Source: Octopus sinensis
Taxonomy: Eukaryota
NCBI RefSeq assembly: GCF_006345805.1
Contig: NC_043011.1
Location: 65,670,464-65,734,463, forward strand
DNA: 64,000 nucleotides
Direction of reading: 5' to 3'
The notes under the pieces are model-generated. The model saw nothing but the letters and a program-made list of their open reading frames with translations, did no database searches and was not told where the DNA came from. Shown here one piece after another: positions 1-62,710 of this stretch. Position 1 is the stretch's first letter; each line of letters starts with the position of its first letter. The position numbers were made by a program, and so were the translations under genes.

Positions 1-2439
1 TTTGCAGCACCCTAGTAGGATGTCTCCTTGGCTTGTTAATGGGTTAACATTCCTGCTTCCAAAAAGTGAAGAAACAAATGAACCAAAACACTATAGTCCC
101 ATAACCTGCTTAACAACTATGTATAAAACGCTAACATCTGTCCTGACGGAATATACTTATAGTTTTTTAACAGACAGAAGCATATTCCCTAATGAACAGA
201 AAGGATGTAAACGTGGATCCTACGGTTGTAAAGGTCAGCTACCCATCAATAAGATGATCTTAGATGATTGTTACAAACGACACAAAAACTTATCAATAGC
301 CTGGATAGACTATAAAAAGGCTTTTGACAGCCTACCACATAGCTGGATTAAGAAATGCCTGGAAATGTATAAGATAGCACCTACTCTGCGAAACTTTTTG
401 ACTGTAAGTATGAGATCATGGAGAATCACATTAACTTTGAACAGTGACAATGAATCTCTAAATGCTGGTGATGTAAAAATGTCATGTGGCATTTTCAAGG
501 GTGACTCACTATCACCACTCCTCTTCTGTTTAGCCTTAATACGTCTCAATGACGCGGGTCCGGGTATAAAATGTTTGATAAAAATATAAATCATTTCATT
601 CACATGGATGATTTAAAGCTCCTTGCAAAAAATGACCAACAACTCAAGGGCTTACTAGCGATAGTCAAACAATTCAGTGACGACATCAGAATGCAATTTG
701 GCCTCGATAAATGTGCAAAAGCTACCTTTATCAAAGGGAAAATGACAAAAACATCTAACGTTAACTTTGACCAGCAGATTGTCATAAAATAATTAAACCC
801 AGCGGAGAGCTACAAGTACCTGAAGGGGACTGAATAAGGCATTCAGTGACGAACGAAAGGATCAGGAGAGAATGTTATCGCAGAGTAAGAGCAATACATG
901 AACACCACCCTGTACTTAACTCCATGTCCCCCTACATGGCCTTGCTATTTGCTTTTGAGCCAAATTAACTAACTAACTAACTAACATACTCAAGACAGAG
1001 CTAAATGCGAGAAACATGATCGAAGCGATCAATGCTTCAGCCATACCAGTCGTGACTTACAGTTTCAATATCGTTAATTGGTCAATTACTGAAACATGTC
1101 AGCTCGACAGAAAAATAAGGAAACTGTTGACAATGCATAGAATGCTCCACCCTAAGGCAGATACAGAACGACTTTATCTGCCAAGAAAAGAGGGAGGCCG
1201 TGGACTTTTACAACTGGCAATAACAATGAAGATTGCTACAATTGGCCTAGACACCTACCTGAAAAACTCTGAGCAGTGCATGTTAAAATCTTGTCTCAAA
1301 ACATGAAGACAAAAAAGCATCATACGCATTAGCAAAACAAGCAAAGAGAAATCTAAGTGAATTCTGAATACAGCAAATTTCGGAATTAGAGATAGACATA
1401 CAAGAAACAAGTCCAGAAAAAGCTAAGCGCTAAAACTGCGGCCTTAGATATTCTGAATGATAAATGGCAAGAAAACCCTCTGTATGGCAAATACCCAATG
1501 AGAGCGAATAATGCAGATATTGACAAAACCCTTGACCCACCAATGGCTAATGGCCTCTGGCTTAAAATCTGAAACCATGGGGTTTATCATAGCAGCTGAA
1601 GATCAATGCCTGCCAACAAGAAACTACCAGACCAACATATTAAAGAACGGCAGTAGACCAACATGTCGTGTATGTCAAAAACAAAATGAAACCATTGATC
1701 ATATTGTCTCCAAGTGCAGTCTTCTTGCGCCTACAGAATATCTCAACAGACACGATAGAGCTGCACAGTTTTTCACTCGGTAATTTGCAAAAACCTTGAT
1801 TTGCCCCTTGAAAAAAAAATGGTGGGAACACAAATCACCTACAGTGCTTGAAAAATGACCACATCTCAATCTTCCGGAACATCACCATTCAAACTGACAG
1901 AAAGATAGATGCAAATAGGCCAGATATCATATTGAAAGACTTCAGACAAAAAACATGCCTCCTCATTGATATGATTGTCCCAATCGATATAAACGTATCT
2001 GTCAAGACCTAACGAAAACCGAGCAAATATAAATATCTTGAAATAGAAATCAGCAAAATGTGGAATCTGAAGTTTAAAACAATACCTGTTGTTATAGGTG
2101 CCCTGGGAATGATAGCGAAAGGGGCTGATTGCTAACTAATTCAGATACCAGGAAATCCCAAAATGGCAGAAATTCATAAGATAGTGCTCATGGGAACTGC
2201 TCATATCCTACGCAAAATATTTTCTGTATAAACTCAAGGTTTAAAATGTAAAACTTTCATTTTATTTTTTATTTTATTTTATATATTATTTTTTTTTATT
2301 AGACATTCACTAGTACAACACCAAAAAATGTATGGCACACTAGGCATAACAATAACTGTGAACTTCCAGCCTGTTGATTCTTGGGTTGTCTGGGTGAGAC
2401 TTGGAGCCAACTTGTACAATTATAAAGCAAAATTCAAAC

Positions 2440-2642: not shown

Positions 2643-5600
2643 ACATCGAAAATACATTAGGAGTGTAAACCCACGTTAAAATTTTCACCGCGACTCCTTA
2701 TGACGCCTGGAGGTTATATAACAAGATTAAGACAAATATCTGTGAAATGTAAATAATGTATATGAGATCTGGCTGGAAAACAAAATTGGGTAGTAGGAGT
2801 GAATACAAGCCCTCTTTTACTTGTGTAGAGATATTATTATGGCGATTGTCGTTCCTTAATACTTTCAGTTCGTTTGTTTCGAATCTTTCACCTTTGAGTT
2901 AATTTAAATATATTCGCTTTGATGGTGTTACTAGCTTTAAAGTGCAGGTGTAGGCGAAATTGAAGATTATACTTAGGTTTCGCTCATGCCGATTACTATT
3001 CATCCTGCTTGAGCATTTTAAACAAGGCTGATCACGAGCCGAAACCAATTAGCAGTTGATGATGGGGATACATATACGTTATGCATGTTTTCTCGATCCT
3101 ATATCTTCTCCACCATTACTCCTCTATATCACACCATGATGAAACACTCACTAACCGCATGGGTGAAAGGGGTTGTGAGAACCTGTCTGCACTGAAGAAA
3201 CCATGATGAAAGGCGTAATATGCGCTTGATCCACATCTGAGTCTCGCTGAAAGGGACGTATTTTGGTCTGGCATGAAGTGAAGTAGGGAACGACAGACAG
3301 GTGGGAGTAGTCGACGGTTGTGATACAGACATTCACCGATCATCTATTCAGGAATAGGATTTCAGATTAATCATGTCTGTGTAACACTCTGATGGTCATC
3401 CCTTTTCTGTTGTTCCTCGCTTGAATATCTCGACCAAACTAAATCATGAGTAATATAAATGGTTAGTCTATCCAAGGCCTAGCATCGCTCCTGTCATTGC
3501 TTCGTTTTCTATCATTCGTCTCGATCACCATGGACTGTATGGCACCTAGCGTTATTATTATGATGCTTACGGCATACGAAAACACAGACCTCTCATCGTT
3601 CTTCTCTTGGAATGCTTGTCGATATCTCTGGCTGCTGCAGTGGTAGCTCTTCATTCATTACCAACCAAACAGATGTTAGCATTCATATTTAGTAGAGAGA
3701 CCGCATGATACTGAGAGTTTCGGTCAGGTGGCCATTAAATCTGACCAATTAGCGAATACGACGGCACAATCAACCAGTTAAACCGAGGTTTTTAGAATTC
3801 TGAATCAACTCTACTACCACAATTGATTCATTAGTTTACAGAATCTCTCTGGATATTCACATTACTCTTTGCCCATAGTTATAGTGGCGCATTTGGGAAA
3901 TCATGTCGGTACATGACAGCTACTTGGTAAACATATGAGTGATTTTTCAAGGGAATTTATAACCTCTTGAAGCTGGTTTAAAATGATGGAGAAGTTAAGC
4001 CAGTAAGCAGTAAGGTTTCCTAATCGACTGGTAAAAATAAAGTAGCGCGAGATACTCAGGAAGGATACCAATCACCTGGGGAATTCCAGCTGTCTCACCT
4101 CAGGTGGACTTACATGGTATGTAAACTTTAGGCATCGACATTCACTCGTATTGACATTTAGTTTCATTAAATTTAATTCCACCTCGAGAAAGACCATCGG
4201 TGTCCCATGAGAGTCCGAAACGACATCTCACTTCGAACGTGATTATGCGTCCATTTATGTATATAGAGACTTTAAAATAAACACATATATGTGTCCGTGT
4301 GTGTGTGTGTATGCGTGTATGAATAAGTGTTTGTGTGTGTTTGTGCCTGTGTGTGTCTGAAATCCTAGTGTCTCTGTTAGCAATCAGTTCCAAATGTGGC
4401 GACCAGAAGCCACTGAGCAACCCTCATTGGATTCAAGCTCGCACAAGGCCATTATTTGATAAATGCATTATAGTTGCTGAAAGATAAAGTGGAGAAAAGT
4501 AAACCAGATGCCAAAACGGAGTGTCGGAGAGAGTTTCATTCGGCATCCATTGAATTACGGTACACATTGAGGACAGCATTTAGGAGCTTACAGTTTATGC
4601 TCAGACCACTTACACAATTGGATGTACGGTATTCCAGTCTCATTTATTTGAAAACTTCAAAACCTAGAAAGGGCTGACCTCAAGAAACCTTCCAATAAAT
4701 TTGACCCCCCTTTTTCCTCTAAGGATATCAGAATATATTTTTGTCCCCTTTAACAGCAAGCAATTTCGTGATAGTGTGTTTTTATTTATTGAAGCTATTT
4801 TATTTTGATAGTAGTCTGCTGTGTTTGTTTTCTTTTGGCTGAGGTTAGTGTAGTCGGAAGTGGAGGAGTTGCGAATTTTCCTGTTTTTCATATTGTACGG
4901 TGTGCTGTAGTTGAGGCTCACATAATTTTGTTGCTCCAAAAAACTGTTAAAAGTTTTGCCCTGTTATTTTTGTTTTGTTTTGACAAGTGTGTGTGTCGTG
5001 CATGCTGCTGCTGTTTGCTCGGTAGTTGGGGTTGGAATTGGCCTTTGCCTTGCTGCTCTTTTCTCAGCTTCCTCTACTTGCTACTTTCCATTTCTACTTT
5101 GCATCACTTTCCGTTGAGATCTTTTCGGGATACGGCCTATTTCCTCCAACATTTTGATGAGAATACAAACTGTTCCAAGTTTACTAAAAGATACGTTCCT
5201 ACACTCATTTATATTATTTACATTCGACGGATATTTGTCCTCATCTTGTTTGTTGTTATCACAACGTTTCGGCTGATGTACCCTCCAGCCTGTTGTAAAC
5301 CGTAGCTATTTGAGTAATTGAGAAAATCTCCACGTTCTGGTGACACGTCTTACATCTAACCATATGTCTTATAGAGCAAGATCCAGCTAAGCCTCAGTTG
5401 CTGCTAGGGGTGCGGTTTTTACCGACATGCCCAAAGATGGCCATCGTCTTCCTAGTTATAACAAAAATCTAGGATTGCGTGGCAACTTGCACTGTCCTCA
5501 CCGTTGCATAAATAAATTTCTCCTACCACTAATATTGCCGTTATTTAAACCTTTGTGGCAACTGTAGTTTTCCCTGATGACAATGTTTGTGTATGTGCCC

Positions 5601-6714: not shown

Positions 6715-6745
6715 CTTAGCATTGTTTCTGGAATTTTTATTTGCC
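6715..6745 (-). CDS. G1 last coding exon: GK-stop (CDS 6745-6737), then 3' UTR
   Basis: Acceptor ttttctttcag, phase 0, ggc aaa taa. Possible donor gtacgt at 6714. Confidence 0.7.
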
Positions 6746-7639: not shown

Positions 7640-8760
7640 TGTTACGCACAAACATTCAGCAGAACTGTCAGGTTTTCAAGGAGTTCGTATTGTTCGTCAT
7701 TTTGAGACTGGTCTTAGCCATTAAAAAATTGCCGAAAATCTTCAAAATGCTCTTTCGAATGTTAATAGTGTTATAGTGCAAATCAAAAGCCAAAGAGAAG
7801 AATCAACTTATTTTCGTCCCGGCCAAATCTAGGCACTCGGAATGGATGATTCAGTGTTTGAAGACAATTGTGGCAAATGAACCCCTTTCGAAGGCTTCTG
7901 ACAGTACAAAAAAACCTAGAAGTTACTCCAAGAGAATGTGTGTTACATATCTGCATAAGCTTAAGTATTATGGACGAATATCTAGAAGAAAACCTCCACT
8001 TCAAACAATTAATATTATAAAAGAAATGAAATGGGCTAAGGATATGTCAGAGAAATTCAGTTAATTTTGGGTTAGACTGATTTTCTCAGATGAATCCAGA
8101 TTTGAATTACTTTCAGACAGTGGACGTGTTTGGGTCTGGATGTTTTCCAATCAAGAATTCGATTTTAAACGACTCCAACTAACTGTGAAACATGACGGTA
8201 GCTCTGTAATCGTATGTGGAGCTATCACCAGCAATGGTCGTTCTGAGATGGTCGGATGTGTTGGAACTATTAACACTGAAAAATACATCGAAATATTAAG
8301 CAACGACTACTTCCGATTTATTCAAACGATTGCACAAAGGAAAATGAACTTTTATTAATGAAATATTCGGCTCCACGAAGCAGAGCGGAAAGGAATCATC
8401 AATGGGTGACTGAAAATAGGTTCGGAAAGCTTCCTTGGCCGAGCCAATCTCCTGACATGAACCCAATTGAAAATCTCTGGAGCATACTAGATAGAGCTAT
8501 ACGAAAACACAAAGGAATCCTAAATCTAAAGATGAATTGTTTCGATTGCTGCGTGAAAAGTGGATAGAAATTCCACACGAGACAAGCCCAAAGATCATCA
8601 GTTCAATGGCCAAAAGAGTTTCTGAATTAAAAACTGCAAAATGTATGTCAACTAAATACTAAAGTATGTCGTCCTATCTATCGACTACATTGCAATTGTT
8701 CGCTTTGCGTACAAAAGTAAAGATTCTGAAAATTAAGGATGTCGATTTGCTTCCTGCATA
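7640..8760 (+). mobile_element. Degenerate Tc1-like transposon in G1 intron 4
   Basis: IFSDESRFEL, HDGSSVIVCGAI and WPSQSPDMNPIENLW motifs in broken frames. Confidence 0.9.
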
Positions 8761-8867: not shown

Positions 8868-9020
8868 AATTTATATATACATATACATTTTTGTTGGAGA
8901 GAGTTCGCTACAGTGCCATGTATAAGGAGAGCTGATAGACGAATGTTTCATTTTCTTTAAGACAAGTTAAATATTTATGCATAATCGAAGAAATATTTGG
9001 AGGAAGAATAAAATGCTTAC

Positions 9021-9108
9021 CTGGTAGCAACCGCTATGCTTCTTGAAAGCGTCATGGCATTGCCAGCTGATATCTTCAGTTAAACATGCCAACAAGTCTT
9101 TGAAACCA
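9021..9108 (-). CDS. G1 exon 4 (88 nt): GFKDLLACLTEDISWQCHDAFKKHSGCYQ
   Basis: Acceptor aaattttcag, donor gtaagc, one open frame (phase 2 to 0), three Cys conserved in paralogs. Confidence 0.85.
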
Positions 9109-9603
9109 CTGAAAATTTAAAGCGAAGCTTTCAAATTTCATTTACGATATGATCACTTAAGACGATTCAATAATTTATCTATAAAATCTAATGAGAACGT
9201 AAGCATTCACATCAACACTAATCTCCATACGTCTCCAGCGGAACTAATGTTACATAGTCGTAGCTATGATCAAACATCTGAAATATGTGAATATCCTATA
9301 TCGCACAAGTGAATTAATTTACCTACTGTGTACAAACTGTAAAGATAAATGCTAAAGCGAAAAGTGTAATAGCTCCTAAAAGAGTTTGATATATAAGGCA
9401 AGTAAATGTCAATTATATCTAATACGTGTGTTATTAATTTATAACGACCATCAGTTTCGGAATCATTTCCTACACATTATTACTTGCAGACAAGCATATA
9501 TGGTTTATATTATATTATATTATAAAATGTTATCATATGTCTGTGTGTGTGTGTAAATGTGCATGTGTGTGCGCACCTATACGTGTGTTATATCATTATG
9601 TGT

Positions 9604-9641
<38 letters not shown>

Positions 9642-9643
<2 letters not shown>

Positions 9644-9921
9644 GGAAATAAAGAAAAAGCTGACAAAATAATTTAAGTAATTTAAGTAATTTAATTAGGT
9701 GAAGTTATTTTTACCGGTTGCGCATTTGTTATGCTTATCAAAAGTTTTATTTTTTAAGAGAGATACAGTTCCCTTCTGATAATTGTTTTTCCTCTTTCCT
9801 CAGAAAGGAAATCTATCTCTCTTGATAAGCATAATAAATGCGCAACCGTTAAAAAGGACTTCACCTAATTAAATTACTTAAATTACTTAAATTTTTTCGT
9901 CAGCATTTTCTTTATTTACTT
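9642..9921. mobile_element. Foldback/MITE-like element with ~100-bp inverted arms next to a (TA)n tract
   Basis: 9642-9741 is the near-perfect reverse complement of 9822-9921. Confidence 0.8.
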
Positions 9922-9963
9922 TTTTTATATATCACAACTCGTGTTCCACTTCTCCTTTTTTAA

Positions 9964-10011
<48 letters not shown>

Positions 10012-10359
10012 TGACAGGAAATTAAGCGAATAATGAAATTAGGAACATCAAGTATATGCTATTCATTAAATACATCAACTAAAATATATGTATATATCTA
10101 TATATACAACCAGAGAAAAAGCAAGAGTTGAAAGTTTGAGATGATGAAAATGGTACCTGTAAATATAGAGATATTTTATTAAGTATTCCAAAGTACAGAG
10201 ACTAGAAATAAGAGCGGAAATTAAAGGAGTTTAAGAAAGAGGTAACAAGTCAAACCTCTGTTTCTAGGTTGTTGGGAATGCACATTAAGGAGACATGTAA
10301 TTCCTCTAAATATGGTGCAGTATGAATGCAATTAACATTGCATTGAGTAGAAAAGAAAC

Positions 10360-10575
10360 TTTTCTACTCAAGGCGGAAGACCTGAATATTTTGGGAAGGG
10401 GCCATTCGATTAGCCCGACCCCAGTTCAAAACTGCCACTTATCCTAACGGGCCCGAATAGATGAAAGGCAAAGTCTACCTTGGGGAAACTAGAATTCAGA
10501 ACGTAGCGACGGGCGGCGAAATACTGCTAAGAAATTCGCCGACGTGCTCACTATTTTGCCAGCTTGCCTCCTGCG
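10360..10575 (-). mobile_element. tRNA-derived SINE, degenerate; paralog ~35995-36205
   Basis: Minus strand reads ggcaagctggcaaaatagtgagcacg...ctacgttctgaattc, resembling octopus SINE heads (from recall). Confidence 0.7.
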
Positions 10576-11387
10576 TAGAATTTCAAACAATGAATGATTG
10601 CTGTTATCTCAGGGCTTAGCGCGCGATTTTCAAGCTAATCACAGTATTTGTGAGGAGGTTTATCGACGTTGTTGTATTTGGATATTTTGATATTCAAAGC
10701 GATCTTATTCATTCTGTTAGCATTAATATTATTGCTAGCAAAAGATGCATTATTGGTGTCACTACGCATTTCATACACCGGATCGACCTATACAATATAC
10801 CATAGACTGGCCTTTTTTTTTACCCGTATGATGAAACATACATAAGTAGTTCAAAATTATTGAATCACCTTAAAATTCCCATTTCGCATATTCTCTGTCC
10901 TTTAAATATCTAAATGCATTTGATACAGAGAAATGCAGAAAGATAAGTATGTAAGTATGCATGTAAATGTGTACGTATATATGTAGGTATGTATGTATGT
11001 AGGTAGGTAGGTAGTTAGAAAAGCAGGTAGTTAGGTAGGTCAGTAGGTAATTAAATAATTTATGTATAGATAAATATACAGATAGATATATATACATATA
11101 TAAATATACAAACAGTTTGCAAGATTAGACAGACAAATAGGCAAATTGATAGATAAGTCTATCTATAAGTCTATAGATAGACTTATAGGATTATAAGTAT
11201 ATTGATATATAGGTTGATAGAAATATTGATCGAGAGGCGGCTAAGTAGAAAGATAGATAAATACAGGCAGAGATTGAAAGATCGTTGGACGTTTAATGGG
11301 TGTAGGTAGTTACAGTAATAGATAGAAAGACAGAGACAGATAGGTTGATAAATATATAAATATGTTGACAGATCGATAGTGATGTAC

Positions 11388-11455
<68 letters not shown>

Positions 11456-11486
11456 ATATATGTGTATACACACACACGCATAAATT

Positions 11487-11525
<39 letters not shown>

Positions 11526-11687
11526 AGGGAGAGAGAGAGATTGATGAATAAATAGATAAATAGATAAATAGTTGGATAGGGTATAGATATGTAGTGTAAT
11601 AGAGAGATTGTTTAGATAGATTTACCGTTATATTTATCATTTTGTAATAAGTTTGTCTATGTATCTTAGAAATAATAAATATCATAC

Positions 11688-11793
11688 GCGCAACCTCTTG
11701 ACCCGTAGCCCTTGGTATATCTTAATTGCTCAGGACATGCATATCTCGCAAAACGATTGCATACTCCCCAAATGTCACATTCGGATGCTGCGT
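11688..11793 (-). CDS. G1 exon 3 (106 nt): AASECDIWGVCNRFARYACPEQLRYTKGYGSRGC
   Basis: Acceptor tttttcactttctag, donor gtatga, open frame phase 1 to 2, compatible with exons 2 and 4. Confidence 0.85.
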
Positions 11794-11900
11794 CTAGAAA
11801 GTGAAAAAGAAATATTTCTTTTTATAGCGTATAGGCCAACATCAAAACTTTTTAGAAACCTATTAGGAAATAAAATTTACAAAATGTCATTACTTGTGAA

Positions 11901-13240
11901 AGGAGTTGCTGTTGGTAAGTACCTTGCTAACTTTCGTCTGAGTCAGACGTGGTTTTTGGAGCTGCTTCAGATGTCACGTGTTAACGTGAAATATTGAATT
12001 TTGAGACTCGACTAAAGCTAGGAGTTTTGTATTTTTGCGGGCGAAGTGAAGTTTTATTGCTTGCATTAATGTTTTTTAGCATTTAATATTTTTCAGCAGA
12101 TAATAAAACTCCACTTTGCCCCAGATATAATTTCTCTGCCTTTTGTCGAGTGTAAAGAGAATTATATTTTTAAAGCGGCGTAGTCCGTCTGCAAAAAAAA
12201 GTTTGTTTTTGAAATTATCTTTGTGTTATCCACGGTAATTACCAAGGAGTACCAAGGATTATTTTACCAAGGGGTTTTACCAACTGTGCATTTGGCCTGG
12301 AATACAACTTTTTGTCCGAAATAATTGAAAAAAAAAAAAAGAAAAAAAAAATTAATTCCTTTGCCTGGATTTGAACTCTTTTTCTCCGTCTATCATTTAT
12401 ATTTAAAAAAAACAGAACTTTTTGTTGAACTGCTATTTCTAATTTTATTTCTTCCCTTCTGTTGCATTTTTTATTCTCCTTTCTGTGTCTTACTATATTT
12501 TTCACATTTTGAACTGTTTTTTCTTACGTTATGGCAAAGAGTTTCACTGTGTGGGAATTGACACCTCCCAAAAAATATGTGAACGAACTCGAGGAAAGGA
12601 CCGTGGTGCTGAGGACATATTCGAAGTCTCTCGACACCATAATGGTTTTTCCGAAAGACACTATTATTAACGAGCTGGCAGACTATATGCCAGCCATTAA
12701 ACACATTCAACGGGGAGCCAAATACGCAACGATTTGGTTGCTGTTTGACTCCCCAAAGCAGCTTGCGATTTCGCAAGCAAGCCCATTGAGGGCGAAGAGA
12801 TTTTGTTTCTCCCAAGCTACAAGGGAGAAAAATTATTAAGAAATATTATTGAAATAAAGTAGCTTGCTAACCAACCACATGGTTCCGGGTTCAGTCCCAC
12901 TGCGTGGCATCTTGGGCAAGTGTCTTCTGCTATAGCCTTGGGCCGACCAATGCCTTGTGAGTGGATTTGGTAGGCGGAAACTGAAAGAAGCCTGTCGTAT
13001 ATATGTATATATATATATGTATGTGTGTGTGCTTCTGTGTCTGTGTTTGTCACCCTAGCATTGCTTGACAACCGATGCTGGTGTGTTTACGTCCCCGTCA
13101 TTTAGCGGTTCGGCAAAAAAGACCGATAGAATAAGTACTGGGCTTACAAAGAATAAGTCCCGGGTCGATTTGCTCGACTAACGGCGGTGCTCCAGCATGG
13201 CCGCAGTCAAATGACTGAAACAAGTAAAAGAGTAAAAGAG
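11901..13240 (+). mobile_element. tRNA-derived SINE split in two (head 11901-11931, body 12857-13240 with AGTAAAAG tail) in G1 intron 2
   Basis: A-box-like ggagttgctgttggt and B-box ggttcagtccc. Empty site in unit B at ~37510-37530 (gtgaaagttactatttc). Confidence 0.85.
11932..12856 (+). mobile_element. Internally deleted ORF1-only (gag-like) retroelement inside the SINE
   Basis: ORF from ATG 12531 is homologous to the one at 57945. 15-bp TSD at 11917-11931 and 12857-12871. Confidence 0.75.
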
Positions 13241-13289
13241 TATTTCTAAATCTCAAAACGAGAGATATTCAGCAACAGTACTTTGGTGA

Positions 13290-13672
13290 AAAGATCATTT
13301 GCCGACATAACATGGCTTTCCTGGTTTAGGAGGAATGTTGCTGCAATTTAGCTCCAGGAGACATCGTCTCCAGCTGGCTACGCCACACGATCAGTGCCGT
13401 TATGTTTTCGAACAAGGGAATCTAGCATCCCCCCTCAACTGAAAACTATATCTGTGTATCGCGATCCTTGGTTTATTTCCCTTCATCAGCAAAGAATAAT
13501 TGTTCGGTCGAATATTGTTAAGAACTGGGTGGGTGTGCTAGATTCACTTGTTCGAAAATATAATGACAAGGATCGAGTTTTATAGAAATCTGGAGAAGAT
13601 GTCTTCTGGGGCTAAATTACATCAACATTCGTCCTAACCTAGGACTGCCGTGTTATGTTGGAAATGATCTTT
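13290..13672. repeat. Imperfect ~150-bp inverted repeat (foldback) in intron 2, present in all five gene copies (~25060, ~37575 partial, ~47735, ~59900)
   Basis: 13290-13435 aligns to the reverse complement of ~13525-13672 at roughly 75% by eye. Confidence 0.75.
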
Positions 13673-14461
13673 ACTTCCTGTCGTTATTAAAGGAAAAGGA
13701 AGACATAAGATTTTGAATAGTGTTATAAATTCTCATAACTGACTGATAACACACTTTCAAGCCCGTTCACATCTACGTTTAATTTTAGAAATATGTACTA
13801 AACACACTCTAATTATTATATAAGTTAATTAATGTTCATAGAATTGAAATTAATTATAAAGTATTATAAAGGCAGTAGTTATATATCACGATACAAATAT
13901 TATAAACGATAAAATCAAATTATACTTATTGTTACGTTATATAAATTGCTCGCTATACAAAAAAACAAACGCCTGTTTCTTACTATAATACCACTGATAA
14001 AGGGTAATTGAACAAATATAATCAGTCGCAAGAATAAATATATTAAGAAATGCTACGATATCTAAAGATAATTCCAAAGGTTTTTCTTAATGAATAAGGA
14101 CAATATCGTGCTGTGATTCTACATAGTGATCTCGTACTTGCTTATGACTCCCAATAATCTTGAGTTTTATATTATTATTTTTTTTATTTATATTTATATG
14201 GTTGTATATTATTTATTTTGAATTCGTTTGCGACTCAAATGATAACTTTTCGTTGCAAAATGACAGAATATTTCGGTACTTTGTTCACATTTATACACTA
14301 AATGTTACGCTGAATATTGCATGTTTGAGGGATACATATTATTTACGGAATGGCAAAATTATTTTACCAGCATAAGATTGGTGAATCTAAAACAATATTG
14401 TACATCAGTACTCGCTCTATCTCTCTTTCTCTATCTCTCACTCTCTCTCTCTCTCTCTCTC

Positions 14462-14511
<50 letters not shown>

Positions 14512-15061
14512 TAAATTCTAGTGTATATTTGTTTGTGTGTTTGCGTGTGTACACACACACGTACAAGCATATATATATAGATATATACATATATGTATAT
14601 ATATATATATATATATATGTACATATCATTAACCAAGGACGTGGTTGAATATAGTCCAAGATTTCATCAATTGCAGCTGGTTCCAAGCGTCACTACTTAT
14701 TCAATTCTCAGTAAAATTGCAAAGTGTGAAAAGTTTTAAAGAGGACACCTCCTCAGCTACGTTAGAATTTGGCATAAATAGTTTGAGATTTGGTTCAGTA
14801 GAAAAAAATCTACATGAAAATATGTGGGTCTTCAAGGTGGGCAGGAATGTAGGTTTTCATTTTCACTTAACAAAATGTTTAAATTTTAAATAAATGTCTA
14901 CTTTCCATAGGCTTAAATGATAGAAAAATAGAGGAGGAATTTGAGAATCGTTAGACGCATTTAACAAAACTCAGTAGAGAAAATGTTATGAGGTGAAATG
15001 TTATGAAATGTAAAACGCCCCACGCAATAATTGTAATTATAAACACGAATGTCTTTAATGT

Positions 15062-15175
15062 AGGGTGGCGGAAATGCTGGCAGAAATTTTACGACACCAG
15101 GCGAAATTCTTAACGGATTTTTTCCCATCTTTACGTTCTGAGTTCAATTTCCGCGAAGGTCATTTTATCTTTCGT
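15062..15175 (+). mobile_element. Old SINE head remnant; paralogs ~26770, ~37925, ~49410, ~61740
   Basis: gctggcagaa...ggcgaaattctt...tacgttctgagttcaatttccgcgaaggtc. Confidence 0.6.
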
Positions 15176-15995: not shown

Positions 15996-16032
15996 GGGAT
16001 ATGAGAAGTGCAACAAAAATGAGTATCTTCAT
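15996..16032 (-). CDS. G1 exon 2 coding part: signal peptide MKILIFVALLIS (exon 16043-15996)
   Basis: Acceptor cattttacag, ATG at 16032, basic residue then hydrophobic run, donor gtgagt, phase 1. Confidence 0.85.
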
Positions 16033-19044: not shown

Positions 19045-19800
19045 CATTTAGCTATGTATGTACCTATGCGTCTATATATATAGGTCGTCTGCTGCTGGAG
19101 AGGACCGACCAGGTAAAGGACCTTTGCATCTTAGTGGAGTTTTCCTTTTCGCCTTCGGGTCAATGCGTCTAAGTTAACAACAAATCACGCGGAGTTCTGT
19201 TCTTGATTCGACGGTCATTCGGAATTCTTAGAGCAGCCTATTCCTACCGCTCCATGTCACGCTGGTGAGACCCATAATGGAGTACGGGATTTAAGCCTCT
19301 TCTCCTTATCTCTTCAAAGACATACAGCAACTTGAAAGAGTCCAGAAGCTGGGTACCTGCATGGTTATTGGTCTCAAGCATTTGTCTTATGAAGAAAGAC
19401 TGAAGACGCTCGACCTTCATTCTCTAGAAAAACGACGACGCCGTGGTGATCTCATTCTTGCTCACAACATCATAAGCGGAAAGTGTAACCTCTCGAAAGA
19501 GCTGTTCTTCACTCCTGCTCCAGAGCGTCGACTGCGGGGTCACTCCGAAATGCTCTATCTGCGACGAATTCATTTCAATCGAAGGAGAGGGTCTTTCTCC
19601 GTCCGTGTTGCGGATCCGCGGAATAAGCTGCCGAACGAGATAGCGAAGATGACGACGATCGCTCGTTTCAAAGTCTCCCTTGACCACCAGTGGCCTGAAC
19701 TCTTTACATGAACACCACACTGTACATGACTCGATGTCCCCCTACATGGCCATGCTTTTTGCTTTTTGAGCCAAATAATTAACTAACTAACTAACTAACA
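19045..19800 (+). mobile_element. CR1-like LINE 3' fragment with (ACTA)n tail; paralog ~41680-42431
   Basis: VKDLGILVD and YEERLKTLDLHSLEKRRRRGDLI motifs. Confidence 0.9.
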
Positions 19801-23129: not shown

Positions 23130-24420
23130 ACTTGTGAAGTCATTCAATCGTGAATTTCATCCCACACAACATGGAGAAAATTTCTTATAAAGAAAAATAT
23201 ATATTCAATAAGTAAAGCATTAAATGCGGATTTGCGATGGGGACGAAAGCAGCTCCTATTCTTGCGAACCTAATAAGGGGTTATTTTGAATTCACCTTAT
23301 ATGACGTATCACTTCAGAAATAGTGTTACTCATTTTACCTCTACATAAGAGAAAATTTGAAGCGATACCTGGATGACTGCTTTATCATTTGTAAGGAGAA
23401 CATCGACAAACTTTTTGGATTTCTAAACAATACTAAATGCCATAAATAGTAACATTCAATTCACAATGGAATATAACAAAGAACAACTTCCATTTTTAGA
23501 CATCATGATAAAAAAATGTTAACAATGAAATCATAACTGACATATATTATAAACCAACTGATTCAACACAATATCTTATTTTTAACTCATGCCACCCGAA
23601 ACACATAAAAATAAACATACCTTTCAACTTAGCAAAAATATCTGCACAATAGTGTCTGATAGAAAAACTTGGTACCTCCGTCTTCAAGTACTCAAAACAA
23701 CACTTCTTGAAAGACAATATCCACCCTCTCTTATCGACAAGGTAATTAAGAGTGCCAAACAACTAGACACAAAAACACTAAGTACAAAAAAACATAGCAC
23801 CTCACCTCAAACATAAACAATACTATTTATATCAACACACAACCCCAGAAGCAGTGAGGCATTCAACACTATTGTGCAGACACTTCTTTTACTAACTAGA
23901 GATCCAAAAATGAATAACATCCTGAAAACCCACAAACTCATCAAATGCAAAAAAATAAAACAAATCGATAAGGAGAATACTAAAAAATGCGAAGTTTTAC
24001 AAAACAACCACGAAACCAATGGTTGCAAAACTTGTACGCCCAAAATGTGGACATGTCCCAACCTGCTTGAAGACTTGGATTTCCTTTTTAAACAAGGAGA
24101 GAGGTTCACAATTAAAACTAGTTTCAACTGTGCCTCTGAGATTATGTAATAATCTGCTTGAATTGCGGACACCACTATATTGGACAAACGAATATGACAT
24201 TGAGAAAGAGAACCAACCTACATAAGAAGCAAATCCGTTTCCCGCAACACAGAAGAATTTCTCTCAGTGAACATATAGAAAAATATGCAGGTAACATCAA
24301 ACCAAATTTCAAAGTCATCCCTTTCTATCTGTACAAAGACACAATCTCTCAACTAGAACATTTAAATAAAGAATATTTTCTATTGAAAAATACATGAATA
24401 GCGATAGTGGAACCGGTCGA
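23130..24420 (+). mobile_element. Degenerate Penelope-like element (RT plus GIY-YIG); paralog ~45900-47085
   Basis: GFAMGTKAAPILANL, RYLDDCFII, CHPKH..NIPFNLAKRICTIVS and CGHHYIGQT motifs. Confidence 0.9.
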
Positions 24421-24793: not shown

Positions 24794-24896
24794 ACGCAAT
24801 TTTTTCTGCTGGATATGTACTAACGATATTGAGTGTTACATCTTTGTTTACCTATACCTTGGCACTCTATCAAAGTGAGCGATGAGGTTGCAGCAT
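24794..24896 (-). pseudogene. G2 exon 3: AATSSLTLIECQGIGKQRCNTQYR*YISSRKNC; no downstream exons found
   Basis: Same splice sites as G1 and G3. In-frame TAG at 24822-24820 where G3 has CAG. Confidence 0.8.
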
Positions 24897-26169
24897 CTAG
24901 AAAGTGTAAAACTATAATTCTTTTTATAGCGTTTAGGCCAACATCAAAACCTTTTAGAAACATATTAACTCATATTTTTTTTCAATATGTCATTACTAGT
25001 GAATGTTACTATTTCTAAATCTGACACCGAGAGATATTCAGCAAGAGCACTTTGGAGTAAATATCATTTGCCGTTATAACATGGAAGTCCTGGTTTAGCA
25101 CGAATGTTGCTGAAATTTACTCCAGGAGACATCGTCTCCAGCTGGTTACAACGCACGTTCTATGCCCTTATATTCTCGAACATTGGAATCTAGTATACCC
25201 ACTCAGTTGAAAATGATATCTGTGCATCTCCATTCTTGGGTTATTTCCCTTCATCAGCACAGAACCCTAACGTTAACCCCGGTGAATTTTGTTTTGAGCT
25301 GAGTGGGTGTGTTCGAAAATATAATGACAAGGAACGAGTTTTATAGAAAGCTGGAGAAGGAGTATCCTTGGGCTAAATTACATCAACATTCTTACTAACC
25401 TAGGACTGCCGTGTTATGTTGGAAATGATCTTTACTTCCTGTCGTTACTAAAGGAAAAGGAAGACATAAGATTTTGAATAGTGTTATAAATTCTCATAAC
25501 TGACTGATAACACACTTTCAAGCCCGTTCACATCTACGTTTAATTCTAGATATAATTAATAAAGACACTCTAATTATTATATATGTTAATTAATGTTCAT
25601 AGAAATAACGTTAATTATAACGTATTATAAAAGCATTAGTTAGATACCACGATGAAAATATTATAGACGATAAAAGCAAATTATACTTACATATTACGTT
25701 ATATAAATTGTTCACTATACAAAATAACAATCGCCTGTTTCTCACTTTAATAGTACTGATAAAGGGTAATTGAACAAATATAATCAGTCACAGGAATAAA
25801 TATATTAAGAAATGCTAGGATATCTAAAGATAGTTCTAGAGTTTTTTTTTAAATGTATATGGACAATATCGTGCAGCGATTAAACATACCGATCGCGCAC
25901 TTACTTATGACTCCCAATAATCTTCAGTTGTATACTATTTATTTAATAATCTATTGTACTTGTATAATTTTAATTCACTTGCGATTCAACTCATAACATT
26001 TTGTTGCAAAATGACAGCAAATTTGGGTATTTTGTTCATATTCATAGACGAAATGTGACGTTCATTATTGCATGTTTGAGGGATGGACGATTTTATACTT
26101 GTAAATGGAATGACAAAATTATTTAACCAGCATATGATCGGTAAATCTAAAACAATAATGAACACGAGT

Positions 26170-27294: not shown

Positions 27295-27333
27295 AGATAT
27301 GAGAAGAGCAATAAAGATAGATATACTTAGCAT
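27295..27333 (-). pseudogene. G2 exon 2: signal peptide MLSISIFIALLIS (ends phase 0)
   Basis: Acceptor tattttacag, donor gtaagt, homologous to G1 exon 2. Confidence 0.75.
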
Positions 27334-31317: not shown

Positions 31318-31348
31318 CTTAGCATTGTTTCTGGAATTTTTATTTGCC
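31318..31348 (-). CDS. G3 last coding exon: GK-stop (CDS 31348-31340)
   Basis: Identical to the G1 exon; acceptor tttcctttcag. Confidence 0.7.
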
Positions 31349-33916: not shown

Positions 33917-34004
33917 GTGGAAGCACCAGTGATTCTTCTTGAAGCGCCTATAGCATTGGCGTTCGACATCAGAAGTGAAACATGACAAGAGGTCTTTGTA
34001 ACCA
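33917..34004 (-). CDS. G3 exon 4: GYKDLLSCFTSDVERQCYRRFKKNHWCFH
   Basis: 88 nt, AG/GT (gtaagt), open frame, Cys spacing kept. Confidence 0.85.
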
Positions 34005-37309: not shown

Positions 37310-37412
37310 CCACAATCTCTCCTGCTGGATATGTACTGGCTATATTCAACATAACATCTTTGTTTACCTAAACGTTGGCATTCTCTCCAGCTGAGCGATG
37401 AGGTTGCAGCAT
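37310..37412 (-). CDS. G3 exon 3 (103 nt): AATSSLSWRECQRLGKQRCYVEYSQYISSRRDC
   Basis: Same acceptor as G1, donor gtagat (weaker), open frame phase 1 to 2. Confidence 0.8.
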
Positions 37413-39089: not shown

Positions 39090-39126
39090 GGGATATGAGA
39101 AGTGCAATAAAAATGAGTATCTTCAT
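39090..39126 (-). CDS. G3 exon 2: signal peptide MKILIFIALLIS
   Basis: As G1 exon 2, one codon different. Confidence 0.85.
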
Positions 39127-42100
39127 AATGCCGTTTCCTGTAAAATGCTTGTTCTTATGGTGTATGGTTCACTTCTTTTTTAGTATCCTCACTTCCCTTC
39201 CTCGTTACTTCATCTTATATTTTGCAATTTAATGTAACAGATGGTTTAGTCAGAGTGTAGTTTCAACATCTTTGTGATTAACGTTCTATATTTGACGCTT
39301 GTATAATATATCTGAGAATTTATTAATTTCAGTATTGATTTGCTTTCTTTGTGGCCGTCATGCTAAGGCTAATTTAATGGAGCTGTGCTAGTATGGAACC
39401 TACATCATATATTCCTCTTAAAATTATAGTGAACATGATATTCCAGTGTTTGAAACTTTCAATCTGCATAAGTCTTTCGTTAATTATATTCAGTGAGAAT
39501 ATTATATATTGAATTAATATTGAGTGCTCAATTGTATCAAAGTATTGATGCTATTAAAGTATTTATATAATTAATACGAGCGAGTATATATACATATATA
39601 TTTGTTAATAATATATTAATATAAGTAGTATTAAGAAATCAATATCAAAACACATCAGAAAGATATACATGTGTGAAAAAAATGATTGTTGTATTAAAGA
39701 TATATTAATAAATGTAAATATGTATACAAATATATGTAAATACGAATAAATAAAATTATATAACGTATATTACAGTGTACAAGTTTTGAATTAATTATTT
39801 AAATCACTTTACGATCGTTTAACATTAGAATTTTCCCTATAATGAACTCCTATAGTGATAAGCATTTATAGACAACGCTTCTGCTCTTCAGAGATATAAA
39901 ATTAGAATTGCGTATAACATATCGAATGATAGATTTTTTTTTTTTTATAATTTGAAGTAAATGTATAAAATATTATTTGTTTGAATGATAAATTAACAAT
40001 TAAAAATTACTGCTTTTGATGAGATTCTTTAAATCCATATATACTTCCTTGGTTATTCTTCTGCAATAATCCATAATATTCATATTTAAAATACGTCATA
40101 TAAAATCCTTTGACAAAGAGAGACAACTTCTTAGCCGAAACAAAAATCCAGAGGAACACCCAAACTTTCAGACTGGGACCGTCGGACACATGAGAAAGGA
40201 TCACAAATTCACAACAACCAAAAATATTGTAGATCTTAATGAACGACCCCAGAACCGAGTTTTTACAAAATCTCTTCACCAGGAGCTGCATAAAATCAGA
40301 TTTCATGGGAGGGCTGCAATCTAAAAACCACTACTTTCATAAAAAAACGTTGCAAAGCGTTTTTTAATGGTGTGAAATCCTACAGAATTGGTCCCTAGAG
40401 AAGAGAAACAATGTTTTTTTCCGGACGAGGCATCATTTAATATACTTCCAAAGACCGGCAAATTATACGACTGAAAGGAGCCAGAAGAAGCTTTTGACGC
40501 AGACTGCCTCCTTTCAACTGTTATAAATGGAGGAGGAAACATGATGATATTGTTGGGTGGGCGCTATATATTGCAAATTCGCCGGCTCAGTGGTTTCACG
40601 TCATGGCAGAATTAATAATTACGACTATTTAAGCATTTTATCTTATTAATATCAACCAATGTTTGCGAAAATGTTCCTGGAGAGAAACGAAATAATTCAG
40701 GGTGATAATGCACCATTTCACACAGTTAAAGTTGTTACTGAATGGCACGAGGGACATTCTAGTGAAGGTAAACAACTTATTCGGTGTCTTCAGGTTTTAG
40801 ACCTCAATAATATTGAACATTTAGGGTGCATTTTAGATAAACAATTAATGGGTCGATGTCATCCACCGTTATCAATAGAAGATTTGAAGAATATTTTAGT
40901 TGAAGAATACATAATAATTCCTTAGTAAACACTTAAAACTCCGTACGAGTCCACACAATTTAAGGTGTAATTACTGCCAAAGTTGGCACTACCTCATCTT
41001 CAAATAACTGTGTTTGAAATTATGAGGTGTTTCCATTATTTTTGTCAAAGCCTGTATATATATATATGCATATATGTGTGTGCGAATATATATATATATA
41101 CATTTGTGAGTGTGGATGAGTATATATATACATAAATAAATATCTGTGTATGTATATGCATATATATATTCATCTATCTATCACTCTTTATATGTATATA
41201 TATGTCTGTGTGTGTATGTGTGTGATAGAGACAGACAGAGAGAGTGCATATACAACCATACATACATACACTCATGTGTATATAGGTAGTTAGGTATGTA
41301 TGTTCCTGTGTGTGTACGTACATTTTTATATGAAACAGGAAAATATTTCTTTAAATATATGAGTCTATATAAGAAAAATCATTTTGTTGCAAACTATTTT
41401 GCAGGCTAAATTATTGAGATTGAATAGAGAACGACTTAATAACGTACAAACACATATGTTACGCTGTATTTGCTTATTTAAGATAGAACAATATTCCAAG
41501 AGCATTTAAATTTGTCTCCATCGAATTTATTGCCCAGCACTCCGATGGAGTTCTCACAATTTATTTTCCTAGTCACTTTAGATAAAGATTTAATCATATT
41601 CTTTTAATTTTCATTGTTCATTATTTTCTGTTTCGACATAATTTAGTAAATCAAAGTATCATCCATAACTTTATATTTCTATGACATTTAGCTATGTATG
41701 TACCTATGCGTCTATATATATAGGTCGTCTGCTGCTGGAGAGGACCGACCAGGTAAAGGACCTGGGTATCTTGGTGGATTCTTACTTTTCGCCTTCGGCC
41801 CAATGCGTCCGAACTGCCAAGAAATTACGCGATCTGTTCTTGATTCAACGGCCATTCGGAATGCTCACAGCAGCCTATTCCTACCGCTCTGTGTCATCTG
41901 GTGTGGCCCATATTGGAGGGCGGGATTCAAGCCTCTTCTCCTTATCTCCTCAAAGACATACAACATCTTGAAAAGCCCAGAAGCTGGCTACCCGCATGGT
42001 TATTGGTCTCAAGTATTTGTCTTATGAAGAAAGACTGAAGACGCTCGACCTTCATTCTCTAGAAAAACGACGACGCCGTGGTGATCTCATTCTTGCTCAT

Positions 42101-44256
42101 AACATCATAAGCCTAAAGTGTAACCTCTCGAAAGAGCTGTTCTTCACTCCTGCTCTAGATCGTCGCCTGCGGGGTCACTCCGTAAAGCTCTATCTGCGAC
42201 GATTTCATCTCAATCGAAGGAGAGGGTCCTTCTCCGTCCGGGTTGCGGATCCGTGGAATAGGCTGCTGGACGAGATATTGAAGATGCCGACGATCGCTCG
42301 GTTCAAAGTTTCCCTTGACCACAAGTGGCCTGAACTCTTTACATGAACACCACACTGTACATGACTCGATGTCCCCCTACATGGCCTTGCATTTTGCTTT
42401 TTGAGCCAATTAATTAACTAACTAACTAACTAGCATATACGTATATAGATATATACGAATAGTAGAGAAAAATCCCTACTTTTAGTAAATCATCAAAGCG
42501 ATCGCTAGATGTTCAACGTTCCGAGTTCCTTCACAATGCTTAAAGCATACAAAGGACAGATGCAATACGTGTATTATCTTACAAAGTTGATATCCTATGA
42601 AAACAAAATAATTAACTGATATTCATACTACTTAATTTCACACAAAGCCTAGAGAATTTTACACACCGACTCTCGTATCAATAAATTGTTTCCACACTTG
42701 AAATTCTTTTACTTAGCATTTGAATTGAACGTAATTATACGAAGGGCATGCATAGCTTCATAGCACAGTTTACTCAGACCTAACCTTCTTGGAACTATAA
42801 ATTTCCAAATTATCCGTTTGATTTCATAGATACATTGAACTCCCAGCGTACTTTAGTGACTGCAAAACACCAACGCGATTTAGTAAAATATATTTTTGGT
42901 AGTTGAGTGTTATGCGGTCTCCTAAATTCCCCATTGGCTTTGCACTTATAAAGACCTTAGTATAACCATTTCAATCTGATGTGTCACCTTACAAAGCGAA
43001 GAGATTTATAGGTGTCCGTCCAATGGAAAAATGTATGTCCCCAAAGCAAAGACGTAATATGTCAAGAAAGGAGTATAAATCAAGGAGAATTGTAGAAAAC
43101 CGAGGGCGAGAGTCTCAAAAGAGAAAGGTGGTGAGACTTACTAAAGATCACCAAGCTCATACTGCAGCACGTGAAATAGAGTCCGAAGATGGCGGTGAGA
43201 TGATGTTTTCCGAAGATCAGAAAAGGCATCCAGCACCACATCAAATGGGATCTCAAGACAGATGAGAGATGAGAGTTGCTCAAGATCAGCTGGACATGCT
43301 ACAGCACGTCAGATGGAGGACCATTAGTGAAGGGAGAGGGAGATGAGACTTTACCAAGGTTAGCAAATGCATTGGTCAGCACATAAGATGGTCTCAAGAG
43401 AGATGCAAGGTGACATTTTCAGAAGGTCACCAAAAGAAATGAGACTTCTCCAAGTTCATCAAAAGAAATGAGACTTTCCCAAGATCAGCAAAGGGGAAGT
43501 GGCTTCCCAATGATCAGCAAACGCATGCTGCAGCACTTCACGCTGAATTATTGAACAATATGTTTTTTTTTTCTGATTGGTCAGTGGTCCATTAGGATAC
43601 ATTACATAAAGTGACCACGTACAAATTCGTTCTTCACAACTCCTACAGCTGCTTTCATATGTGATCCAACCATTCCTGTGAAAAGATACTTTTGTCGATA
43701 GTCGCGTGCTAATTTGAAATTAACATCTCAGCTTAGCTTATAAACTTTCAAATTAAATTAATGGCACGCGCTACTCAAACGGTAATGTAACATTAGCACT
43801 ACAAGCAAGACCTTCTGAAACTCTTATAGATTCTCTGGAAGGCCTGTCCATTCAATCAAAGGATTTTCTAAACAGTATCACAGAAGTCAACGCCACATTT
43901 CAGATGTCATCGCTTGGTGCATCTAAAGATATATTGGAACATGGATTAACATACTCGTTGAAAGATAAATGGCAGCTCTATGAATACGTTGCAAGCACAG
44001 CTACTTCAAATTTACTTTCTGAGTGATGGAGGACAACGAAGGTGAAGGAGATGTCAAAACATCAGACGTTGTGCATACATATTGATAAAAACGTTAAGAT
44101 AACAAGAGAAACAATGAGACCTCGATTTTATGTAAATAGAGGATTTTATGTGTAAAAGTAATATGTGTAAAAGTAAAATTATTCGGTTGCTATGATAGAA
44201 CTCTGAGTTTCGGATGCCGAGGTGGAAATCGAAGAATTGTCATATATTACTTATAC

Positions 44257-47469: not shown

Positions 47470-47572
47470 ACGCAATTTTTTCTGCTGGATATGTACTAAC
47501 GATATTGAGTATTACATCTTTGTTTACCTATACCTTGGCACTCTATCAAAGTGAGCGATGAGGTTGCAGCAT
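47470..47572 (-). pseudogene. G4 exon 3, with the same TAG (47498-47496) as G2
   Basis: Near-identical to 24794-24896. Confidence 0.8.
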
Positions 47573-48857
47573 CTAGAAAGTGTAAAACTATAATTCTTTT
47601 TATAGCGTATAGGCCAACATCAAAACATTTTAGAAACATATTAACTCATATTTTTTTTCAATATGTCATTACTAGTGAATGTTACTATTTCTAAATCTGA
47701 CACCGAGAGATATTCAGCAAGAGCACTTTGGAGTAAAGATCATTTGCCGTTATAACATGGAAGTCCTGGTTTAGCACGAATGTTGCTGAAATTTACTCCA
47801 GGAGACATCGTCTCCAGCTGGCTACACCTCACGTTCTATGTCCTTATATTCTCGAACATTGGAATCTAGTATCCCCACTCAGTTGAAAATGATATCTGTG
47901 CACCTCCATTCTTGGGTTATTTCCATTCATCAGCACAGAACCCTAACGTTAACCCCGGTGAATTTTGTTTTGAGCTGAGTGGGTGTGTTCGAAAATATAA
48001 TGACAAGGAACGAGTTTTATAGAAAGCTGGAGAAGGAGTATCCTTGGGCTAAATTATATCGACATTCTTACTAACCTAGGACTGCCGTGTTATGTTGGAA
48101 ATGATCTTTACTTCCTGTCGTTACTAAAGGAAAAGGAAGACATAAGATTTTGAATAGTGTTATAAATTCTCATAACTGACTGATAACACACTTTCAAGCC
48201 CGTTCACATCTACGTTTAATTCTAGATATAATTAATAAAGACACTCTAATTATTATATATGTTAATTAATGTTCATAGAAATAACGTTAATTATAACGTA
48301 TTATAAAAGCATTAGTTAGATACCACGATGAAAATATTATAGACGATAAAAGCAAATTATACTTACATATTACGTTATATAAATTGTTCACTATACAAAA
48401 TAACAAACGCCTGTTTCTCACTTTAATAGTACTGATAAAGGGTAATTGAACAAATATAATCAGTCGCAAGAATAAATATATTAAGAAATGCTAGGATATC
48501 TAACGATAATTCCAGAGTTTCTTTTAAATGAATACGGACAATATCGTGCGGCGATTAAACATACCGATCGCGCACTTACTAAATGGCTCCCAATAATCTT
48601 CTGTTGTATATTATTTATTTAATAATCTATTGTACCTGTATAATTATAATTCGCTTGCAATTTAACTCATAACATTTTGTTGCAAAATGACAGCAAATTT
48701 GGGTATTTTGTTCATATTCATAGACGAAATGTGACGTCCATTATTGCATGTTTGAGGGATGGACGATTTTATACTTGTAAATGGAAAGACAACATTATTT
48801 AACCAGCATATGATTGGTGAATCTAATACAATAATGAACACGAGTTCTCTCTCACAT

Positions 48858-55035: not shown

Positions 55036-55066
55036 CTTAGCGTGGTTTCTGGAATTATACTTCGTC
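55036..55066 (-). CDS. G5 last coding exon: DEV-stop (CDS 55066-55055)
   Basis: Same splice sites as G1; 7 of 31 nt differ. Confidence 0.6.
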
Positions 55067-57364: not shown

Positions 57365-57452
57365 CTGGTAGCAACCGCTATGCTTTTTGAAAGCGTCATG
57401 GCATTGCCAGCTGATATCTCTAGTTAAACATGCCAACAAGTCTTTGAAACCA
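57365..57452 (-). CDS. G5 exon 4: GFKDLLACLTRDISWQCHDAFKKHSGCYQ (gene lacks exon 3)
   Basis: One amino acid different from G1 exon 4. Confidence 0.75.
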
Positions 57453-62673: not shown

Positions 62674-62710
62674 GGGATATGAGAAGTGCAATAAAAATGA
62701 GTATCTTCAT
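62674..62710 (-). CDS. G5 exon 2: signal peptide MKILIFIALLIS
   Basis: As G3 exon 2. Confidence 0.8.

Follow-up and report, generated by a model that had tools for sequence, protein, structure and literature searches.

The window analysed here, a 64,000-nt stretch of the Octopus sinensis genome, is eukaryotic DNA of ~33% GC with many simple-sequence repeats and fragments of transposons. Self-comparison of the window revealed three tandem units of ~24 kb, namely unit A (~2442-27800), unit B (~27824-50400) and unit C (~50519 to the window end), with HSP identities of 95-98%. Units A and B diverge by 2.6% over clean alignment columns, and units A and C are only ~2.7% different. Each unit carries one member of the same gene family (G1, G3 and G5, respectively), and the window also contains two truncated pseudogenes of the family, G2 and G4. 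All exons described below lie on the minus strand.

The first coding exon of G1 (15996..16032) is 37 nt long, encodes a signal peptide (MKILIFVALLIS plus 1 nt), ends in phase 1 and is followed by the donor GTGAGT. It differs at 1/37 nt (V>I) from the signal exon of G3 (39090..39126), the sequence of which is found again in the first coding exon of G5 (62674..62710). The second coding exon of G1 (11688..11793; 106 nt, phase 2) encodes AASECDIWGVCNRFARYACPEQLRYTKGYGSRGC, which is of a derived type, called A-type here, and includes an extra Cys; that of G3 (37310..37412; 103 nt) encodes AATSSLSWRECQRLGKQRCYVEYSQYISSRRDC and lies 14/103 nt from its Octopus bimaculoides ortholog. The third coding exon of G1 (9021..9108; 88 nt), which is entered in phase 2 and ends in phase 0, is also of the derived A-type, as is that of G5 (57365..57452), and the G3 exon (33917..34004) is of an ancestral-like B-type. 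This layout explains the comparison of G1 with G3 that an earlier note on this DNA had made, and also the name exon 4 that it had given to the third coding exon, if a 5' UTR exon is counted. In the predicted G1 and G3 products, which are 78-79 aa long, a signal peptide precedes a mature part of ~63 residues. Each of the two mature-protein exons supplies three of the six conserved Cys, and the mature part of G1 carries a seventh Cys.

A short next exon of 31 nt follows in G1 (6715..6745), and its counterparts lie at 31318-31348 in G3 and 55036-55066 in G5. Unlike the O. bimaculoides ortholog, all three window copies run into an early stop here under the same splicing, at codon 3-4 (GK or DEV, then stop; GK in G1). 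The +1 frame of this exon is open and similar to ATNNSRNNK of the ortholog.

G5 is without a second coding exon and retains the signal exon, the third coding exon and the short next exon; it is probably broken, because the signal exon joined directly to the third coding exon is out of frame. At 57905-59852 in G5, ~3 kb of unit A (9561-12566) is missing and other DNA stands in its place, which includes a stretch of 48% GC and ORFs at 58218-58574 (+) and 58598-59238 (-). The pseudogenes G2 and G4 are twins with second-coding-exon copies at 24796..24918 and 47472-47594, respectively, each with an in-frame stop. An exon-1-like ATG lies near 27330 (G2) and 49955 (G4), and a third-coding-exon copy is absent from both.

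A profile of the three third-exon translations in the window was scored against 1.84 billion representative proteins, resulting in two hits. The better one, to the 114-aa protein XP_052830538 (E=9.9e-9), matches residues 49-77, which are exactly the third coding exon. XP_052830538.1 and its isoform X2 are the products of LOC128249941, an uncharacterized protein of O. bimaculoides with a signal peptide and six Cys, and the LOC128249941 locus (L003, CM046618.1; 25 kb) holds three tandem paralogs. The third coding exon is orthologous to positions 12504-12591 of L003, which encode residues 49-77 of XP_052830538. Across introns and exons, the window is 77-83% identical in nucleotides to the middle O. 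bimaculoides paralog and ~68-72% identical to the other two. The third-exon product of G3 is 69% identical to XP_052830538 over 29 residues, and that of G1 is 39% identical over a 31-residue tblastn alignment.

The window genes share with LOC128249941 and its two tandem neighbours a collinear architecture of a signal exon (phase 1), a 103-106-nt exon (phase 2) and an 88-nt exon (phase 0), with the same exon order, a signal peptide, two three-Cys exons and a tandem array. The splice sites and open frame of the third coding exon are retained in all six gene copies, and G1, G3 and the three O. bimaculoides genes all have the six Cys, with Trp8 also retained. By sequence comparison, the window genes are co-orthologs of O. 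bimaculoides LOC128249941, and their predicted products belong to a tandem family of octopus-specific small secreted Cys-rich proteins with six fixed Cys. The thought in the earlier note that the segment might not be an exon falls away, as it is an annotated coding exon in the O. bimaculoides ortholog gene model.

The second profile hit, a 1711-aa repeat protein (P0122) of the tick Ornithodoros turicata, contains eight repeats with the exon-like motif C-D-x-KD(L/F)LSKF-x-x-KV-x-AQC. Its score is inflated by the repeats and it was set aside; the resemblance of the motif is probably due to chance or convergence. Pfam yielded no family for the exon products, the full predicted G1 and G3 proteins, or the 6.7 kb downstream minus-strand translation. 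A candidate C-type-lectin start motif was dropped, as no frame of the minus strand matched Pfam between 2700 and 9120. A PDB sequence search gave no significant match, and the AlphaFold model of XP_052830538 is all-helical with a mean pLDDT of 55 and thus unreliable. A full-text search found no literature on a LOC128249941-like family.

On the minus strand, the third coding exons of G1 (9108..9021) and G3 (34004..33917) align without gaps and differ at 28/88 nt, spread 12/7/9 over the three codon positions. The sole open frame, in which the first base is skipped, reads GFKDLLACLTEDISWQCHDAFKKHSGCYQ in G1 and GYKDLLSCFTSDVERQCYRRFKKNHWCFH in G3, so that 15/29 residues differ, a single altered codon (TTG/CTC) is purely synonymous, and the three Cys codons (TGT, TGC, TGC) are unaltered. 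Upon realignment, the counts given for this exon in the earlier note (28 of 88 nt, 15 of 29 residues, one synonymous codon, intact Cys codons) proved exact. Even at a deliberately raised background of 4% (2.6% was measured), the Poisson probability of at least 28 differences in 88 nt is 2e-16. All window copies have canonical splice signals, with the acceptor TTTTCAG and the donor GTAAGC (G1 and G5) or GTAAGT (G3). The G5 exon is of the G1 type with 3 nt differences (GAA>AGA, E>R; AAG>AAA, synonymous), and codon 11 has three states (E, S and R) across the three copies.

The upstream intron flank (9109-9400, -) is near-identical in G1, G3 and G5 and differs at 3/292 nt between G1 and G3, in line with the ~3 differences in ~240 nt noted before; its final 122 nt are the same in all three genes, yet 20/121 nt from the ortholog. 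The contrast in identity between the exon and its upstream flank is thereby confirmed. Downstream of the exon, 15/91 nt also differ (p=7e-8 vs the upstream flank), which the earlier note had missed. The divergent 5' part of the downstream intron extends over 8870..9020 (-) in G1 and ends at a (TA)n tract. Within it, G1 and G5 share a ~285-bp deletion of a segment that G3 and the O. bimaculoides paralogs retain; ~6/45 further differences (~13%) follow the deletion, and then the (TA)n tract closes the patch. The 5' edge of the patch lies no more than ~5 nt from the acceptor; at 25% divergence, ten more patch sites would all be identical between the copies with a probability of ~0.06.

Two nearby open segments were considered as exons and rejected. 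The AG/GT-flanked hydrophobic ORF at 9327-9375 (-), AITLFALAFIFTVCT, is frame-incompatible, as a signal-peptide exon, with the ortholog gene model, and a word-based search with the 46-aa product of joining it to the third coding exon gave no match. Third codon positions account for both G1/G3 differences in this ORF, which is probably no exon. A candidate terminal exon at 8686-8733 (-) has lost its acceptor AG and first Cys in G3 and adjoins a transposon end.

Divergence confined to exons recurs elsewhere in these genes. The second coding exon exceeds the third in divergence, with 46/103 differing nt and an indel of one codon (3 nt) between G1 and G3, and its intron flanks differ at only 2/108 nt upstream and 3/47 nt downstream. 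The second coding exon of G1 is 45-52% different from every family member, in comparison with 24-34% between the oldest sampled paralogs. A simple-sequence-rich stretch downstream of it (~11440-11690) is likewise divergent. The short next exon of G5 differs at 7/31 nt from those of G1 and G3, yet the flanks of this exon are identical in G5 and G1.

Such abrupt changes in identity could come from the assembly, if haplotypes had been mis-joined or paralogs collapsed in units A/C and B, so that the patches were chimeric joins. The density of simple-sequence repeats in the region, the indels or simple-sequence tracts that adjoin both larger patches and the small distance between units A and C are compatible with this. 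However, the patches are exon-precise and in frame and preserve the homologous Cys and Trp positions, the A-type is seen twice (G1 and G5) with small differences of its own each time, and misassembly would not generate a new sequence type. An assembly artefact is thus considered very unlikely.

The O. bimaculoides ortholog was used as the outgroup to polarise the G1/G3 differences. For the 28 differences in the third coding exon, the ancestral state is in G3 at 20 and in G1 at four, and four are unresolved. This exon differs from that of the ortholog at 15/88 nt in G3, a value like that of the adjacent intron (20/121), and at 31/88 nt in G1; the unusual copy is therefore G1/G5 and not G3. In the second coding exon, 38/46 differing sites are derived in G1, as are 11 of the 13 that differ over the initial 77 nt of the intron downstream of the third. 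Neither of the other O. bimaculoides paralogs is closer to the A-type exon than to the B-type, which discards the known paralogs as donor, and an A-type donor copy is absent from both the 64 kb window and the 25 kb locus of O. bimaculoides. A-type exons are about equidistant from every known member (31-46/88 nt for the third and 46-54/103 nt for the second coding exon) and thus fall outside every sampled paralog lineage. Unlike G1, the O. bimaculoides paralogs have similar exon and intron divergence and a dN/dS of 0.5-1.0; the G1/G5 exon type is far more divergent and is present in none of the three.

Sites at which the protein did not change also point to different ages of exons and introns. 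The codons for the 22 residues on which G1 and G3 agree differ synonymously at four of 11.5 synonymous sites (pS 0.35), against 0.01-0.04 in introns; at intron-like rates of 1-4%, such a value has a probability of 7e-6 to 1e-3. The pS at conserved residues between G3 and the ortholog is 0.21, and the synonymous branch lengths are star-like (G1 0.21, G3 0.17, ortholog 0.10). Between G1 and G3, intron divergence is 0-2%, and each gene is ~16% from the ortholog at intron sites. The ratio of transitions to transversions is 28:60 in the patches vs 74:63 in the unit background (p=0.0015), and looks like saturated, old divergence. The 191 nt of the two exons hold ~58 derived changes, against ~2.5 expected at the neutral divergence of the units. 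G1 and G5, in units that are young (2.6% between A and B), thus carry a very different, much older-looking version of the mature-protein exons inside young non-coding DNA.

These values bear on the alternative of a recent burst in place, in which point mutations arose in the mature-protein exons of G1 after the duplication and were fixed by diversifying selection, with the introns evolving neutrally. A burst of this kind needs no extra assumption for patch boundaries at exon edges (no more than ~5 nt from the acceptor in the third coding exon, and both edges of the second), and it agrees with the retained Cys scaffold, with the three states of codon 11, with the short next exon of G5, where changes likewise cluster within the exon, and with the raised dN/dS of the G1 branch given below. 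It would, however, require ~58 fixations in 191 nt at ~1.3% neutral change per lineage, which implies a dN/dS above 20. The synonymous divergence of 0.35 at conserved residues, the downstream intron flank of at least ~90 nt that is derived in G1 as well (11/13), and the shift in transitions and transversions towards a saturated-looking spectrum all argue against it, and the third coding exon alone has no significant dN/dS above 1. We regard a recent burst in place as unlikely.

Selection was assessed over 62 codons by simple counting methods, so that all p-values are nominal (no multiple-test correction). For the third coding exon alone, the Nei-Gojobori dN/dS between G1 and G3 is 1.38 (Fisher p=0.77), and that of the G1 branch is 1.7 (p=0.55). 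When 28 changes are placed at random, the expectation is 17.6±1.8 residues altered, with 2.5 codons changed by synonymous differences only. The 15 changed residues, which the earlier note had taken as almost only non-synonymous change, are accordingly the neutral expectation and carry no weight as evidence of selection. An excess of non-synonymous changes seen by eye is therefore not evidence alone; the informative features are the direction of change, the divergence at synonymous sites and in the flanks, and the spectrum of mutations.

In the larger alignment of five genes from two species, dN/dS is 0.36-0.98 for pairs without G1 and 0.96-2.5 for pairs with G1, none of which is individually significant. 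On the G1 branch, dN/dS is 2.6 (p=0.027) for the second and third coding exons pooled and 3.7 (p=0.041) for the second alone; the branch values for both exons are 0.37 for G3 and 0.77 for the ortholog. The evidence for positive selection is thus of nominal significance and specific to the G1 branch. Of the two processes proposed in the earlier note, import of a divergent exon fits the older origin of the A-type, and diversifying selection is weakly shown, by the pooled G1 branch and not by the third coding exon.

Drift under relaxed constraint, with G1 and G5 as decaying copies, would account for the loss of the second coding exon from G5, the pseudogenes G2 and G4, the odd number of Cys (seven) in the G1 mature part and the high family-wide dN/dS of 0.4-1.0. 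It is nevertheless extremely unlikely, as drift cannot yield exon-confined divergence of 32-45% with introns at 0-2%. The three Cys in the third coding exon would be retained with P=0.042 under random placement; for 73 random changes over both exons, the probability of no stop is 0.039 and that of keeping all six Cys is 3e-4. The absence of stops and the six kept scaffold Cys, alongside a whole-codon indel, have a joint probability of 1.5e-5, and the splice sites are intact. By this pattern of constraint, the G1 type is predicted to be functional and not decaying.

We consider it rather probable that an old, positively selected exon lineage was set into young non-coding DNA by recombination or gene conversion. 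Old exon lineages of the family would have diverged as positive selection acted on loops that separate the fixed Cys, and recombination or gene conversion within the array would then have placed an exon variant into a recently duplicated unit. In an equivalent version, all but the exons would have been homogenised, with converted or chimeric exons removed by selection; the same data fit import and homogenisation equally. The deletion and (TA)n tract at the downstream end of the third-exon patch are a plausible break or initiation site. Of the four patch boundaries, three are no more than ~5 nt away from a splice site, unlike those of a random conversion tract, so a mosaic of this kind needs either selection or donors with homogenised introns. 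The lack of an A-type donor in the window and in the O. bimaculoides locus, and the about equal distance of A-type exons from all known members, also count against it.

The patches could also reflect a germline process directed at the mature-protein exons, by targeted error-prone repair or by templated cassette conversion from silent exon copies. Three separate exon-limited patches among near-identical paralogs, changes that are clustered and often affect several adjacent bases, and two patches that end at simple-sequence tracts as possible break sites are consistent with such a process. Against it, reservoir copies were not found in the 64 kb, the derived changes have no deaminase-like or A>G bias, and the O. 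bimaculoides paralogs show ordinary, similar divergence in exons and introns. To our knowledge, no exon-directed rewriting mechanism is known in animal germlines, and we hold this process to be highly improbable here. The more specific proposal that octopuses diversify such genes in the germline by exon-directed cassette conversion or error-prone repair, started at exon-flanking simple-sequence tracts, is a long shot; if true, the mature-protein exons would be rewritten with single-nucleotide precision and the introns spared, and the footprints of such a process would be the three independent patches, each limited to an exon, between units that are 97% identical.

The preferred reading, a mosaic of old exons in young non-coding DNA, has parallels in other systems. 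Venom and defence peptide genes (snake phospholipase A2, three-finger toxins, conopeptides, and frog-skin and mammalian defensin-type peptides) combine accelerated evolution of the mature exon with conserved introns. The octopus genes share with toxin and antimicrobial-peptide genes the conserved signal exon (1/37) and introns (0-2%), hypervariable mature exons (28/88 and 46/103), a preserved Cys scaffold with its codons, and tandem duplication. Unlike those genes, they match no Pfam toxin or defensin family, and their synonymous and flanking-intron divergence gives the exon a different age, not merely a higher replacement rate. In MHC class I and II genes, introns are homogenised by recombination and the peptide-binding exon keeps old lineages, so that exon and intron trees disagree. 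The octopus case is similar in its young introns around old, selected exon lineages; the MHC variants, however, are alleles at one locus under balancing selection, and those described here are tandem paralogs that encode an unrelated small secreted protein.

Among molluscs, the nearest parallel is the MgCRP-I family of Mytilus, which comprises mollusc-specific, multi-copy secreted Cys-rich peptides with a conserved leader, a hypervariable Cys-rich exon 4 and protected Cys codons (PMC4558851). In MgCRP-I genes, a ~100-nt middle exon that encodes a propeptide stands between a phase-1 intron, which follows the signal exon, and a phase-2 intron; a dibasic cleavage site precedes the Cys, all of which are in the last exon (PMC4558851). 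The octopus gene matches the intron phases and the ~100-nt middle exon, and has four exons if the putative 5' UTR exon is counted. Unlike in MgCRP-I, its middle exon is hypervariable and holds three of the six Cys, with the other three in the third coding exon, and no dibasic propeptide site is evident in the octopus products. Positive selection in MgCRP-I is strongly significant across many genes (PMC4558851), whereas in the octopus it is nominal and on one branch, and the likeness shown is one of architecture. For tandem genes of Cys-rich secreted proteins in venom and host defence, hypervariable mature-peptide exons within conserved introns are already well known; the octopus family is an uncharacterised one.

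Outside the cell, the mature protein probably acts as an effector or ligand whose variable surface is carried by a disulfide scaffold; defence, saliva or venom, and chemical signalling are examples of roles it might have. The locus thus presents an uncharacterised, octopus-specific family of small secreted disulfide proteins, the variable surface of which would be in the course of being reshaped. With exons that are 32% and 45% divergent within introns that are 98-100% identical, and with an outgroup at hand, this is an unusually clean case, suited to separating the long-debated contributions of positive selection, gene conversion and targeted mutation behind patterns of hypervariable exons and conserved introns.

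Several other features of the window were recorded. Unit A carries insertions of ~1.3 kb (11902-13241) and ~1.5 kb (13618-15128) that are not in unit B. The first of these begins 108 nt upstream of the second coding exon of G1, and part of it (12856-13240) is a repeat that is also found in O. bimaculoides gene introns. At 3757-3806 (+), eight differences between units A and B fall within ~25 nt in surroundings that are 97-99% identical, with no exon or ORF evident. Rfam and tRNA scans of the window found nothing. Transposon remains include a reverse-transcriptase fragment (RVT_1) at 2-589 (+), a GIY-YIG (Penelope-like) ORF at 23817-24394 (+), and ORFs at 19361-19711 and 41996-42346 (both +) that read as CR1-like C-terminal pieces, without a Pfam match. 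The intron after the third coding exon of G1 contains a degenerate Tc1/mariner-type transposase fragment (DDE_3) at 8065-8564 (+). Part of this fragment (8306-8564, within an alignment of 8306-8754) is a ~82% match to the intron of the O. bimaculoides ortholog, and the insertion therefore appears to predate the split of the two species.
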